A stretch of 47,312 nucleotides of DNA from Neoconidiobolus thromboides FSU 785 (Eukaryota > Fungi > Entomophthoromycota). How positions within the stretch are numbered: the stretch's first letter is position 1; the number at the start of each line of letters is the position of its first letter. Below the pieces are notes generated by a model. The model made no database searches. It saw only the letters and a list, made by a program, of their open reading frames with translations, and had not been told where the DNA came from. Positions 3,230 through 19,328 of the stretch are shown here, one piece after another. The stretch is taken from positions 1 through 47,312 of the forward strand of contig MU626414.1 of NCBI GenBank assembly GCA_025603075.1, in the 5' to 3' direction. Position numbers and translations under genes: made by a program.

Positions 3230-6133
3230 ATGGCTAACTCAGAGGATAATAGAACCAATGACTATGAAATTATTGAAGTTTATGAAGATGGTAGCTTATT
3301 AAATAAGCGAGTACAATCCTTAAGTAGAGAAGCTAGTCATATTAGAAAGGGAATGGACGAGATTATTATAAATGAAGAACAAGATGAAGAAGAAGTAATT
3401 AGTTTGGTAAGTCGTTGATGAATGCTACCATATGTTTTTATTTATTTTATTAATTAGAGTTCTCAATCTACAAAAAGAAGAGTAATCATTGACTCTAGTG
3501 ATGAAGAAGGTATGATAGTCAAAAAAAGTTATAGACAAAGAGCAAAGTTGGTCGTAGATAGCGATACTGAAGAAGAGAACACTATTGCAAAAAAAAATAA
3601 ACCTGAAGTGGTATGTATAGAAGGGAGTGATAATAGTAGTGATTCGGAGATAGAAATCATCCGACATAAGAGAAAAAAAGTGATAGATTCGGATGCTGAA
3701 TTGATAGAAAAACAAAATGAAGAAGAAAAAGAGGATGTTATTGATTTATCTGAAAGAATAATTAAGGAAGAAATTACCACTCATGAATATTTAGATATTT
3801 TGACTTTCTTTAATCAAAGTAGTATGGAAGAAATTAAAAAATTATTAACCATAGAGAAAGAAGAACGCGTACAAAATATTATATCTCATCGACCTTATAA
3901 TACTATAGAGGATTTGAGAATATTAATAAAACAAAGTTTGATTGATAAATACTATAAAATCATTAATGGATTTAATGCCTTGGATCAATTAGTAAATTTA
4001 TCAAATCAATGGCAAAATCAATTTATTATTAAAGGATTTAAAAATATTAGATTTGAATTAAATAATGGGATTTCATTAAAAGATTATCAATTAGAAGGAG
4101 TCAAATGGTTGCTAAATAAATATCAAAATCAATGTGGAGCTATTTTAGCAGATGAAGTAAGTTGTTTATATTTATATTATATTGTTATATTAATTATTAT
4201 TATTATTAAGATGGGATTAGGAAAAACATGCCAAGTGATTACATTATTATCATATATTATATTAAATTTAAATCATAATGATATCAATCTGATTGTTGTA
4301 CCTGCTTCCGTATTAGATAATTGGATAGAAGAATTCAATAAATTTTGTAAAGTTATCAAAGTGTTAGCTTATAAAGGTAAATTAAACATATAATAATAAT
4401 AATAATATATCATTATTATTAGGTACTCAATCTGAAAGAGCACGAATCCATTTTGATTATAAACGAGGTAACATTCAGCCACAAGTAATAATCAGTACTT
4501 ACAACTTAATCAACTCTGATAAATATGATCGTCATTTTTTTAAATCATTAACATATCAAAGTATTATATTAGATGAAGGACATTTAATAAAAAATCAGCA
4601 AACTCAAAATTATCAATATTTAAGTAAATTAAAATGTAACTTTAAATTAATATTAACTGGCACTCCATTACAAAATAATTTAATGGAATTATTTAATTTA
4701 TTTATGTTTTTTAATCAACCATTTTGTATTAAAAATAATGAGTATTTGGAAGTATTACTAAACTCAAATATATTAAAATTTGGTCATCTGAAAGATAATA
4801 AAATGCAAAAGCTGGATCAATTATTTAATTTAAGATTACAAAAATTAAAAAAATTAGTAGATAATTTTATTTTAAGGAGAACTAAAGAAGACGTAAGTTA
4901 ATCAATAATAGTATAAACAGTAATAACGTATTCCTATTTCCCTAGGTATTAAAATCCCTGCCTATAAAAACAGAAAAAGTAATCAAAATCTGCTTAGAAG
5001 ATAGTCAAAAGAAAGCATATAATTCAATAATTGAGCAAATTAAAGATTGGAAACTATTGGGCAATAATCAATTAATGGATATTTCATTTAAATTGAGAAG
5101 AATCGCCAATCATGTATTATTAATACCTAAGGGTTTTTATTATACTCAAAAATTAAAAAGGAAAATTGCTAAAGAGATTATTAAAGTATATTTAATATAT
5201 AAATATTATTTCAAATATTGATTTATTGATTTAGGATCCTAAATTCCATGATTCGGATGTGGATGCTATTTATGAGGTAAGGATTATTATTCTATATTAT
5301 CTAATATAATATATAACAACAATAATAGGATTTAGTGCCTTACGCAGATTCAGATATGATCGAATTATGTCAAAAATACAAAGTAAGTTATTGAATTTGT
5401 TAAATTTATTATAATTTGATTTATCTATTGAAGTGTATTAACAAATATTTATTGTCCAATGATAAATATATGAATAGTGGTAAAGTAAAATGGATGATAG
5501 AAAATTTACCAAAATTAATTCAACAGGTAAATATTATTATATAATATCGAATAATTAACTTATTTATTTATAATAGAATCATAAAATTATTATTTTTAGT
5601 CAATTTGTGATGGTCTTAGACATTTTAGAAACCGTAGTTACGAACCTTAATATAGAATATCTCCGTTTAGATGGTGCTACTGCTCAAAATGACCGACAAA
5701 ATTTAATTCATGAATTTAATAATAATAGAAATATATCAATCTTTTTATTATCTACTAAAGCAGCATCGACAGGTATTAATTTAACTTCAGCAGATACAGT
5801 TATTTTACATGATTTGGATCATAATCCTCAAAATGATAGACAGGCAGAAGCAAGAGCTCATAGTAAGTATTATTAAATAAAAGTAAGCTAAAAAATAACA
5901 TGTGTTAATATATTTTTTATTAGGAGTTGGTCAAACAAAAGATGTTACAGTATATAAGTTAATTACATTAAATACTATTGAGGTAAAACCTAATATATTA
6001 ATTAGAATTTAATATTTAATATTTAATTTAGGAACGTATCTTTGATATTAGTAATTCTAAATTATTATTGCATTCTTCATTTCATAATGAAGATAAAAAT
6101 TTGAATTTGGATTTCTTTAATAAAATTGAATAA
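3230..6133 (+). CDS. SNF2-family chromatin remodeller, Fun30/SMARCAD1-like (spliced, about 10 short introns)
   Basis: Joining exons across GT-AG introns (e.g. 3407-3457, 4157-4210, 4377-4422, 4893-4945) gives LKDYQLEGVKWL, GAILADE|MGLGKT (motif I), IILDEGH (motif II), LILTGTPLQNN, IIIFSQFVMVLDILE, YLRLDGAT, LLSTKAASTGINLTSAD, DLDHNPQNDRQAEARAH; ends ..FFNKIE-TAA at 6131-6133. DEGH plus an acidic N-terminus fits the Fun30 subfamily. Confidence 0.9.
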
Positions 6134-16540: not shown

Positions 16541-17100
16541 ATGAGTATGATTTATCAAATATAGTAATAATTGAACAACAAATAGAATTCGCTTGGAATG
16601 GTTTAACTTAGCAGTTAACTGGTCAAATTTTCTTTTACCAGATTCCTTGATTCCATTGGCTTATCTGCTAAAAATTTTCTCAAAAACTATCTAAATTATA
16701 AAGCTCTTTAAAAAAATTTTATTGGTCAAACCAGGGTCAAAAATTTTAGACCAATAAAATTAACTAAAAAATCCGAAAAAATTCGGTTCCCAAAAATCAC
16801 TATAAAGCTAAAAATGTAAAGATTATGTTAGATCGTTGGTTATGATCCCAATCCTTCTATTTAAAAAGTTGTATTTTATGACTTCCTACTTCTATCTATA
16901 GCTACAAGTGACGGTATGGTGGCTGTGTCTATAGTCTTGTAGTACTTGAATTTATCGACACAAACTGTGTTATGGACGCATGATTTGTTTTGTTTCTTTC
17001 TCTCCTTGTCTTACTGTAAACTATATTTCAGTGTCAATAGTTTCTCCCATTGTATTAAATATTAATAGGTAAGTAACAAAGCTTTGATAAGTTAAATAAT

Positions 17101-17183
17101 AATACAATGATGATCTAAATTTCAAATTTTCAAACTAGAGTTTCTGAACTACATTGATTAGAACTTTACTCTGAAATTGTATT
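17101..17183 (+). ncRNA. snR78: Box C/D snoRNA, snR78-like (predicted LSU Um, yeast position 2421)
   Basis: C box ATGATGA 17107-17113, D' CTGA 17144-17147, C' TGATTA 17155-17160, D CTGA 17171-17174, terminal stem AATACA/TGTATT; guide TCAAACTAGAGT (17130-17141) is complementary to conserved LSU ACUCUAGUUUGA, and the D+5 rule selects the U of GACUCUAG. Confidence 0.85.
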
Positions 17184-17335
17184 ACTTTTTAACTTTGTTA
17201 ATTAACTTCCAAAGTCCATTTACTTATTGTCTTTTTCTAGTTCTTTACTATCCCTTATCATTTTAAATGATATTTACTAATAAGTAACCGTATGTAATAT
17301 ATATGGTAAGTAGATAGTTTCTCTTATATACTTTT

Positions 17336-17418
17336 TTAAGTGATGATTTTCTTTAATGGAATTACCGTCCTAATTTTCTTGAAGGAAAACATAGCTGGCT
17401 GCTTTTTATACTGAAATT
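17336..17418 (+). ncRNA. snR77: Box C/D snoRNA, snR77-like (predicted SSU Um, yeast position 578)
   Basis: C box GTGATGA 17340-17346, guide TGGAATTACCG 17357-17367 complementary to SSU CGGUAAUUCCA, non-canonical D' (CCTA/CTAA), D CTGA 17411-17414; lies in an intron between the snR78- and snR75-like genes. Confidence 0.75.
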
Positions 17419-17592
17419 ACCTTAATTATTTAAAAGCTTTATTAGTATCATTTATATTAATTTTGATTTTATAGATTTTAATGCATTACCGCTTATCTTA
17501 CCCATGTATCATAATGCTCCATTGATAATTAATGTAAGTGTTTTTACTATTCTTAAACATAATAATAGTAGTTTTACTATTATTATTTTCAT

Positions 17593-17685
17593 CTAAATGA
17601 TGAGCCCTTATTAGATGACGAGTCTGATTCAAGCTATTGATGTTGAAAGACTTATATATAATTCCATTCATGCAAAACTGAGCAT
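17593..17685 (+). ncRNA. snR75: Box C/D snoRNA, snR75-like (predicted LSU Gm, yeast position 2288)
   Basis: C box ATGATGA 17597-17603, guide ATTAGATGACGAG 17610-17622 complementary to LSU CUCGUCAUCUAAU, D' CTGA 17624-17627 (D+5 selects the G of CUCG), C' TGATGT 17638-17643, second antisense TCCATTCATGC 17663-17673, D CTGA 17678-17681. Confidence 0.87.
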
Positions 17686-18356
17686 ATTATTATAGTTATT
17701 ACTATGAATTAATAAGATCTTTTTATTAATTCTTTTTTATAGTTAGGATCTTAATACCCACACATTCCATTCGTCATCCTCTATAAAATTATTTTTGTAA
17801 ATAAACAAGATATGTTATTTAATAAATTTTTACAATTCATTTATGCTATTATATTTTTTATGCAATCCAAGATTTATATTTTTATTTAAAATAAAGAATA
17901 GTAGAAGGTCCTATAACTAATTAAAGAGTAAAAAAATGATGAATTTATTAATAAATTGACTACAAATAAATTTACAGTTACCGGGAATTCTAAAGTAAGA
18001 GGGTAGAAGAGGAGAGAACTCATTAAGAAATAAACTAAAAATGCTATTAAAACATAAATGAATTTAAAATCAAATTAATTCATTGTATATTCTTAAACAA
18101 TCCTACTACTTATCCCATACCCTAACAGTGAATATAATTAAGTGGTAATTTAATATATAATAATTCAATCAACATATACCCAAAATCATAGTAATTAATT
18201 GAACTACTTCTTCTGCTATTAAATTTTAAGCGGATTAAGTAATTTAATTCAGATAATTATTAATACTTGACATGGTTATTTAAATAAAGTACAATTTATA
18301 ATTTCTTTTTAAAAATTTATTATTCAATATTTTAAATCCCTATTAAATCCTTTACC

Positions 18357-19328
18357 ATGTATTATACATTGTCCATTCTTCAACAGCCAAAACAAGCACG
18401 CCAATGTAGTGGCCGTGATAAAATTGATCGTCGTCCTATTGATCCACCACCAATTTTACAAATCCATAGCAATAGTCCCACCCACGATGGAGATGAAGAC
18501 ATCAATGACAACTCTCAGCTTCATTTTATTAATGTAAAGTTAGTCGACAGTGCCAGTCTACTCCCGATAGAAAACTATAAACCAAACAGCGTACTCAATG
18601 GGGGGTTAAGTCAAACCACCCAACTGATTAAAGACTTGAACAATCAAATAAAAAATTTAATTTTGTTCCAAGATTTATCAGTGAGAGTGGAAGGCATTTT
18701 TAAATTAAAGTTCACTCATTTTATTATTAAAGACGATGTGACAATTCAATTGTCTTCAACTTATTCCACTCCCTTCCAAGTATTTAATCCAAAATCATTT
18801 CCTGGTATGATGGAGTCTACCTTATTGACCAGATTGTGTGCATCTCAAGGTATTAAAATTCGTGTAAGAATGCAAAGTAGAAGAAATAGCAATAATATTA
18901 ACAATAATAATATTAATTTAATTAATAATAACAATGTCGATAAAAGGAAACAATCTTTAATATCTTGCATTTATAATCCAACCAATGACTCATTAGCTAA
19001 AGAAGAAGGTTCCCCATTATCGATTTCTAGTCAAACCGCTTTAAATACTCCTCAAAATAACAATCATTCTACGTTTTATAATGAATCCTTTGTTTATCAA
19101 AAGTATCCTTTGAATCTACCAATGATTACTATACCTTCTAATATAGCTAACAAGAAAGACAATTGTTATAATCATAACAGTTATAGTTATAATGGTTATA
19201 ACAACAATGCATTGAACAATGAATATACAATTAGTTCTTTTAAAAAGCCTAAAGCGGCTACATTGAATCCGACAGATAATAGGGACTTTGATAAGCTGTT
19301 TTTATCATATCTAAAATCAATCTATTAA
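18357..19328 (+). CDS. Velvet-domain transcriptional regulator
   Basis: YTLSILQQPKQARQCSG..DRRPIDPPPILQI, FQDLSVRVEGIFKLKF, YSTPFQVFNPKSFPGMMESTLLTRLCASQGIKIRVR are hallmark velvet motifs; the subfamily (VosA/VelB/VelC) is not assignable by eye. Confidence 0.9.
   Translation: MYYTLSILQQPKQARQCSGRDKIDRRPIDPPPILQIHSNSPTHDGDEDINDNSQLHFINVKLVDSASLLPIENYKPNSVLNGGLSQTTQLIKDLNNQIKNLILFQDLSVRVEGIFKLKFTHFIIKDDVTIQLSSTYSTPFQVFNPKSFPGMMESTLLTRLCASQGIKIRVRMQSRRNSNNINNNNINLINNNNVDKRKQSLISCIYNPTNDSLAKEEGSPLSISSQTALNTPQNNNHSTFYNESFVYQKYPLNLPMITIPSNIANKKDNCYNHNSYSYNGYNNNALNNEYTISSFKKPKAATLNPTDNRDFDKLFLSYLKSIY

Follow-up and report, generated by a model that had tools for sequence, protein, structure and literature searches.

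Layout of the locus

The subject of this study is a locus at 17069-17742, on the plus strand of a 47-kb window of DNA (the whole stretch analyzed, positions 1 to 47,312 of contig MU626414.1 of Neoconidiobolus thromboides FSU 785). Three predicted introns at this locus each contain one box C/D small nucleolar RNA (snoRNA), and these resemble, in order, the snR78, snR77, and snR75 guides of yeast. A preliminary description had reported three introns of 169 to 209 nucleotides (nt), each opening with GTAAGT and each holding one C/D unit, and our measurements agree with it on both points: the introns are 172, 169, and 209 nt long, and C and D boxes were found in 3/3 of them. The features of the locus are as follows.

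16870..17068, plus strand: putative exon 1 of the host, ending at the first GTAAGT; 5' extent presumed
17069..17240, plus strand: intron 1, 172 nt (GTAAGT...TTAAC...CTAG)
17103..17180, plus strand: snR78-like box C/D snoRNA (Rfam RF01176 match, boxes, guide)
17241..17305, plus strand: exon 2, 65 nt, non-coding, with stops in all three frames
17306..17474, plus strand: intron 2, 169 nt (GTAAGT...TTAAT...ATAG)
17338..17416, plus strand: snR77-like box C/D snoRNA (Rfam RF01178 match at 17338-17407, boxes, guide)
17475..17533, plus strand: exon 3, 59 nt, between ATAG and GTAAGT, with two of three frames closed
17534..17742, plus strand: intron 3, 209 nt (GTAAGT...TTAAT...ATAG)
17595..17683, plus strand: snR75-like box C/D snoRNA (full-length Rfam RF01185 match)
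17743..17806, plus strand: putative last exon; 3' extent presumed, first AATAAA at 17800

The three GTAAGT motifs stand at 17069, 17306, and 17534, and the 3' splice sites (CTAG, ATAG, and ATAG), all of the pyrimidine-rich YAG type, end at 17240, 17474, and 17742. Each snoRNA lies in an intron of its own with a canonical 5' splice site, a branch-like TTAAY motif, and a YAG (3/3). From the 5' splice site to TGATGA the distance is 39 nt in intron 1, 35 nt in intron 2, and 64 nt in intron 3, while in the same order 66, 60, and 61 nt separate the end of the D box from that of the intron, exactly as previously described. GTAAGT occurs 19 times on the plus strand of the window, and the chance that three C boxes would all have a copy 35 to 64 nt before them is ~2e-5. 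The same form of intron (GTAAGT...TTAAT/TAAC...YAG) is present in an SNF2-like gene, whose two coding introns, at 3407-3457 (51 nt) and 4893-4945 (53 nt), were verified from the continuity of the open frame; this small sample bears out the claim that ordinary introns measure ~50 nt.

Coding potential was judged exon by exon. Putative exon 1 has stops in all frames. None of the three frames of exon 2 is open; therefore, no protein can be read across the host exons. Exons 2 and 3 contain several upstream ATGs followed by stops. The absence of open reading frames (ORFs) asserted for this stretch holds apart from an ORF of 57 amino acids (aa) on the minus strand, which overlaps the snR75-like snoRNA. 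The GC content is 0.33 in putative exon 1 versus ~0.25 in its flanks (the genome as a whole has 25%) and 0.28 in the putative last exon, and it drops to 0.12-0.20 after ~17800, where AATAAA motifs are numerous as far as 18283. A TATA-like element, TATTTAAAA, lies at ~16858, upstream of putative exon 1. The segment 16880-17068, considered as an upstream "hairpin," has no special fold relative to shuffled sequences (z = +0.32).

The three snoRNAs and their predicted targets

A scan of the whole window with Rfam models gave one match at the gathering threshold, snR75 (RF01185); applying an E-value threshold added snR78 (RF01176) and snoR77Y (RF01178), and nothing beyond these three was found in the window at an E value of <=1. 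All three units have a C box (RUGAUGA) near the 5' end and a D box (CUGA) near the 3' end, and in all three the fifth nucleotide upstream of the D' box pairs with a known methylated nucleotide of rRNA. The target sites of snR78, snR75, and snR77 and of their plant and human counterparts have been listed previously (PMC3511168). The parts of the units, all on the plus strand and identified in the sequence, are as follows.

snR78-like, plus strand: C box ATGATGA 17107-17113; D' guide 17130-17142; D' box CTGA 17144-17147
snR78-like, 3' half, plus strand: C'-like TGATTAG ~17156-17162; D box CTGA 17171-17174
snR77-like, plus strand: C box GTGATGA 17340-17346; D' guide 17357-17368
snR77-like, remainder, plus strand: degenerate D' box CCTA 17369-17372; D box CTGA 17411-17414
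snR75-like, plus strand: C box ATGATGA 17597-17603; D' guide 17610-17622; D' box 17624-17627
snR75-like, remainder, plus strand: C'-like TGATGT ~17639-17645; accessory pairing element 17663-17673; D box CTGA 17678-17681

Nuclear ribosomal DNA (rDNA) was not found in the 24.6-Mb, 799-contig assembly with the Rfam models for large-subunit (LSU) and small-subunit (SSU) rRNA or with three universally conserved rRNA patterns; it was probably left unassembled or filtered out. Because the assembly lacks its own rDNA, environmental rDNA served as the reference. Metagenome contigs were collected that match the reverse complements of the two antisense elements of the snR75-like snoRNA, 6-14 nt apart, which yielded >115 eukaryotic rDNA contigs; none of the reference contigs looked human. 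One of these (L035) is a complete SSU-5.8S-LSU unit according to Rfam, and duplexes were measured on it and on four other fungal-type loci.

The snR75-like snoRNA scores 68.8 bits across model positions 1-88, well over the cut-off of 40 (E value of 5e-12 for the whole window), and a genome-wide Rfam search found the gene in single copy. Its D' guide forms 13 Watson-Crick pairs with GCCUCGUCAUCUAAU, and the target is the G of CCUCG, which is yeast LSU G2288. A second antisense element (17663-17673) forms 11 bp with GCAUGAAUGGA, a stretch of rRNA situated 19 nt downstream of the target, and a pairing of this length was reached by only 1/2000 shuffles. The second duplex starts exactly at position 5 and is therefore not a methylation guide. 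This element matches the "extra base-pairing" element of yeast snR75 and is thus conserved, with mutation in yeast cutting methylation of G2288 4-5 fold (PMC3116282). No terminal stem is evident in this unit.

The snR78-like snoRNA scores 46.5 bits, marginally below the gathering cut-off of 48 (E value of 3e-4 for the window), and its ends are joined by a 9-bp terminal stem; it is the only unit of the three with a clear stem. The D' guide forms a 13-bp duplex (12 Watson-Crick pairs and 1 G-U) with UUGACUCUAGUUUGA of fungal-type LSU rRNA. Its target U is the equivalent of LSU U2421 and lies +133 nt from the target G of the snR75-like guide. This distance of exactly 133 nt between the two LSU targets recurs in all five fungal-type references and equals that between positions 2288 and 2421 in yeast, whereas most non-fungal rDNAs have a spacing of 131 nt and a shorter snR78-like duplex. 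No convincing rRNA target was found in the reference rDNA for the guide next to the D box, and the double-guide snR78/72 form of Pezizomycotina and Yarrowia was rejected for this unit on that account.

For the snR77-like snoRNA the best model is snoR77Y, which belongs to the same clan as snR77; the score of 35.6 bits is under the cut-off of 52 (E value of 4e-3 for the window). The D' guide forms a 12-bp duplex (11 Watson-Crick pairs and 1 G-U) on SSU rRNA, GCCGCGGUAAUUCCAGC / GCCGCGGUAAUUCCA. The target is the U of GGUAA within SSU GCGGUAAUUCC, which is yeast U578, a site that is universally conserved and methylated (PMC3511168). As for the snR78-like unit, the reference rDNA offers no convincing target for the D-box guide, and no terminal stem is evident. 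A GGCTGCT at 17397-17403 could pair with an adjacent AGCAGCC, but this is not significant, as 238/2000 shuffles reach the same.

Rfam and the guide duplexes thus agree with the families (snR78, snR77, and snR75) and sites (LSU Um2421, SSU Um578, and LSU Gm2288) proposed earlier, and the complementarity to rRNA, given then as 11-13 nt, measures 13, 12, and 13 bp on the reference rDNA. The proposed check against Rfam was passed in full by snR75 only, since snR78 and snoR77Y were matched below their cut-offs.

A second host gene and the other members of the cluster

In Saccharomyces cerevisiae, snR78-77-76-75-74-73-72 form one cluster. No snR76-, snR74-, snR73-, or snR72-type guide had been noticed near the three units, and the Rfam scan found none of these other cluster members anywhere in the window. 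Outside the window, a search of the genome for a C box plus guide pattern revealed an snR76-like snoRNA on another contig, C26, within a second gene of similar construction.

G000:C26 ~152,900-153,840 (L136 reverse complement 1060-2052), minus strand: second multi-intron snoRNA host, with GTAAGT-type introns and one C/D snoRNA in each
Same gene, minus strand: snoRNAs in the order snR55-like, snR40-like, snR76-like, snR61-like (RF00476, 55.1 bits, over the cut-off), and U18-like

The guide of the snR76-like snoRNA, GAGCACTGGGC, pairs over 11 bp, and the C that it targets, the counterpart of yeast C2197, precedes the G2288 equivalent by exactly 91 nt. In this gene the distance from the D box to the 3' splice site is 56-62 nt, and because of this the spacing of ~60 nt looks like a constraint in this species. 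Such a spacing fits the splicing-coupled assembly of snoRNPs known from animals and yeast.

The preliminary description considered the cluster to be "split or reduced" and proposed a genome-wide search for the other members. Our results bear out the first alternative for at least snR76, which is housed on C26 with members of the yeast "cluster II." No snR74-, snR73-, or snR72-like gene was found genome-wide, by a search too insensitive for this to count as absence. A genome-wide search with the snR77 model (RF01181) gave no match, missing even the snR77-like gene of the window, and for this reason the blanks for snR74, snR73, and snR72 carry little weight. The SNORD27/snR74 model (RF00086) likewise gave no match genome-wide, and matches to a guide pattern for SSU A28, the snR74-type site, had no snoRNA features, whether or not a C box was required. 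snR73 was sought with its Rfam model (RF01207), which returned one genome-wide match of 17.9 bits that is not a snoRNA; the snR73 site, yeast C2959, could not be placed reliably on the reference rDNAs, and no guide-pattern search was made for it.

Three further observations were made in passing. At L136 reverse complement 1461-1464, in the second host gene, TTATTAG is followed by only 2 nt (AT) before the next GTAAGT, which implies a 2-nt exon or an alternative choice of splice site. The 8-mers GGTTCCCA and ATCCCAAT occur ~200-280 nt upstream of the first intron in both host genes (16785-16792 and 16845-16852 in the window; 869 and 848 on the L136 reverse complement); GGTTCCCA is not enriched genome-wide (176 occurrences versus 318 for a control), and the sharing of both 8-mers is probably due to chance. 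Finally, a weak full-length match to snR79 (RF01184; 22.7 bits, E value of 0.003) at G000:C14:71347-71430 (plus strand; L125) may be another C/D snoRNA.

Nature of the host gene

We think it probable that the locus is a small RNA polymerase II gene with a spliced product that does not code for protein, and that it delivers three box C/D snoRNAs, one per intron. The boxes, guides, family matches, splice-site motifs, and closed frames are present in the DNA itself, and from the sequence we infer transcription, splicing, processing, and methylation. The host transcript would be spliced, and each lariat would be debranched and then trimmed by exonucleases. Trimming would stop at the core proteins assembled on the C/D boxes, namely, Snu13, Nop56, Nop58, and the methyltransferase fibrillarin/Nop1, and would release RNAs of ~75-90 nt. 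In each RNA, the guide upstream of the D' box would direct 2'-O-methylation of one rRNA nucleotide, the predicted sites being the equivalents of LSU U2421 (snR78-like), SSU U578 (snR77-like), and LSU G2288 (snR75-like). The conserved second element of the snR75-like RNA may dock on rRNA 19 nt downstream of the target and aid methylation. Carriage of C/D snoRNAs in the introns of a spliced non-coding host is a textbook mechanism.

Several points weigh against this interpretation. Host splicing and the ends of the transcript are deduced from sequence signals. Two of the three Rfam scores are below the curated cut-offs, the D' box of the snR77-like unit is degenerate (CCUA), and a clear terminal stem is present in the snR78-like unit only, although an absent terminal stem is common among intronic snoRNAs. 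The complementarity of the guides was measured on environmental reference rDNA and not on the rRNA of the organism. Lastly, a protein-coding sequence begins on the same strand 614 nt downstream of the last intron.

18357-19328, plus strand: velvet-domain gene, single exon (Pfam PF11754, E value of 1.5e-36)

Among named organisms, Entomophthora muscae and Massospora cicadina have the best relatives of the velvet protein (43-44% identity), with Mucorales and Kickxellales next. These relatives, the GC content of 25%, and the introns of ~50 nt point to a fungus of zygomycete grade, probably Entomophthoromycotina-like, and agree with the earlier assignment of the DNA to an early-diverging fungus. 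Homologues align from residue 2, and the coding sequence is therefore taken to be a single exon from 18357.

The proximity of this gene raises the alternative that the three introns are real but lie in a long 5' untranslated region (UTR) of the velvet gene, so that the host would be a protein-coding mRNA. The shared strand, the short distance from the last intron to the start codon, and the single-exon structure of the velvet coding sequence are all compatible with this arrangement. The spacer between them, however, has the highest AT content of the locus (GC content of 0.12-0.21) and contains 11 AATAAA/ATTAAA motifs, resembling a terminator plus a promoter, and the upstream ATGs and stops in exons 2 and 3 would hamper translation of the velvet protein. 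The 3-kb locus of the second multi-snoRNA host likewise lacks any complete ORF of at least 60 aa, and free-standing non-coding hosts probably exist in this genome. Furthermore, the regions preceding the velvet homologues of Entomophthora and Massospora yielded no snoRNA: matches at an E value of <=0.1 were absent from the homologue-bearing contigs of Entomophthora muscae (L006 and L007) and Massospora cicadina (L008), as well as from that of a relative at 60% identity (L005), although the last holds only 526 nt upstream of the velvet gene and is uninformative for synteny. A 5'-UTR location is, in our view, unlikely. The non-coding nature of the host, as first proposed, is upheld by the closed frames of exon 2, with its independence from the velvet 5' UTR as a remaining reservation.

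Two observations concern the region upstream of the velvet genes. The L005 contig (Logan SRR3507923) starts, at positions 1-30 and ~500 nt upstream of the velvet orthologue, with ...TTCATATCTGAGAC, a sequence that might represent what is left of a truncated snoRNA at its D-box end, although it is not long enough for a judgment. In the window, an ATGATGA at 17936-17942, in the spacer before the velvet gene, was rejected as a snoRNA; it has no nearby D box or guide and no Rfam match at E values of up to 10.

It is far less probable that the snoRNAs derive from an unspliced polycistronic or independently promoted transcript, processed by RNase III/Rnt1 and trimming, and that the GT...AG pairs are coincidental. 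The snR72-78 cluster of S. cerevisiae does work in this way (PMC3596301; PMC3116282), and TTAAT, YAG, and other short AT-rich motifs occur often at a GC content of 25%. Such an origin would have to accommodate three exact GTAAGT motifs at the right distance by a chance of ~2e-5, as well as a tight spacing between the D box and YAG both here and in the second host gene. No RNase III-type stem-loops were seen between the units, and every unit is bracketed by GTAAGT and YAG; spacers free of splice signals were not found.

It is equally improbable that at least one unit, the snR77-like one being the likeliest, has decayed or become inactive and has ceased to direct methylation, since the features that suggest decay (the degenerate CCUA box, 35.6 bits against 52, and no terminal stem) are set against an intact guide (11 Watson-Crick pairs and 1 G-U) on a universally conserved methylated site, divergent C'/D' motifs are functional in yeast (PMC3116282), and a second snR77-type copy was not found in a search that was itself weak.

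Comparison with known systems

The predicted spliced non-coding host with its three intronic snoRNAs closely resembles the fungal snR72-78 cluster, known as cluster I, in its intronic form. Luo et al. 2013 described this cluster (snR78-77-76-75-74-73-72) in introns of non-coding hosts in Rhizopus oryzae, Basidiomycota, and Pezizomycotina, with the snR76 intron lost in R. oryzae and the members scattered in some Basidiomycota (PMC3596301). The present locus shares with it a host that is poorly conserved and lacks an ORF, introns with a single C/D snoRNA each, the order 78, 77, 75, and canonical splice signals; in R. oryzae and Schizosaccharomyces, as here, the cluster lacks snR76. We read the locus as the 5' part of cluster I, 78-77-75 with 76 missing. 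It differs in having only three members, with snR74 and snR73 not following snR75, and in that snR76 is kept in another host together with snR55-, snR40-, snR61-, and U18-like snoRNAs.

The S. cerevisiae cluster has homologous snoRNAs with the same targets (Um2421, Um578, and Gm2288) and order, and its snR75 has the extra base-pairing element (PMC3116282), but it is unspliced, contains seven snoRNAs, and is processed by endonuclease cleavage instead of splicing. Animal hosts such as UHG/SNHG1, GAS5, and the U22 host gene are spliced, have poorly conserved exons without ORFs, and carry one snoRNA per intron at a fixed distance upstream of the 3' splice site; there is no sequence relation to the present host, whose introns (169-209 nt) are far shorter. 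The guide functions are orthologous to those of human SNORD52 and HBII-135 and of plant AtU15/snoR77Y/snoR37 (Rfam clans CL00063, CL00057, and CL00045), which act on the same rRNA sites (PMC3511168), whereas the hosts and contexts are different and the best-matching models are fungal (snR75 and snR78) or plant (snoR77Y).

The organization, processing route, and targets are all established in other fungi, and the features peculiar to this locus are its block of three members and the place where snR76 resides. The evolutionary informativeness that was first attributed to the locus is accordingly retained with a smaller weight, as an intronic snR72-78 cluster without snR76 is already known in Rhizopus oryzae (PMC3596301). 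An Entomophthoromycotina-like lineage was, however, in the sampling of neither Luo et al. 2013 nor Canzler et al. 2018, and the locus provides one more data point on the arrangement of snR72-78 outside Dikarya. The two studies are at odds over the age of the cluster, which the former finds widespread and intronic, Rhizopus included, and the latter dates to the root of Ascomycota; the present locus agrees with the former. For a fungal lineage that has received little study, it also adds three unannotated rRNA-modification guides and their non-coding host to the annotation.

The combination of a partial 78-77-75 block with snR76 in another host favors an old cluster that was later broken up by individual lineages. 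Taken with the Rhizopus cluster, it may be, though we would put this at slightly less than an even chance, that cluster I predates the split between Dikarya and zygomycetes and that the snR76-like intron moved between hosts. If true, a cluster I older than Dikarya would contradict the proposal by Canzler et al. 2018 that the cluster was assembled from scattered genes at the root of Ascomycota (PMC5824354), and the snR76-like snoRNA in a cluster II-type host would give a concrete example of how an intron can carry its snoRNA from one host gene to another.

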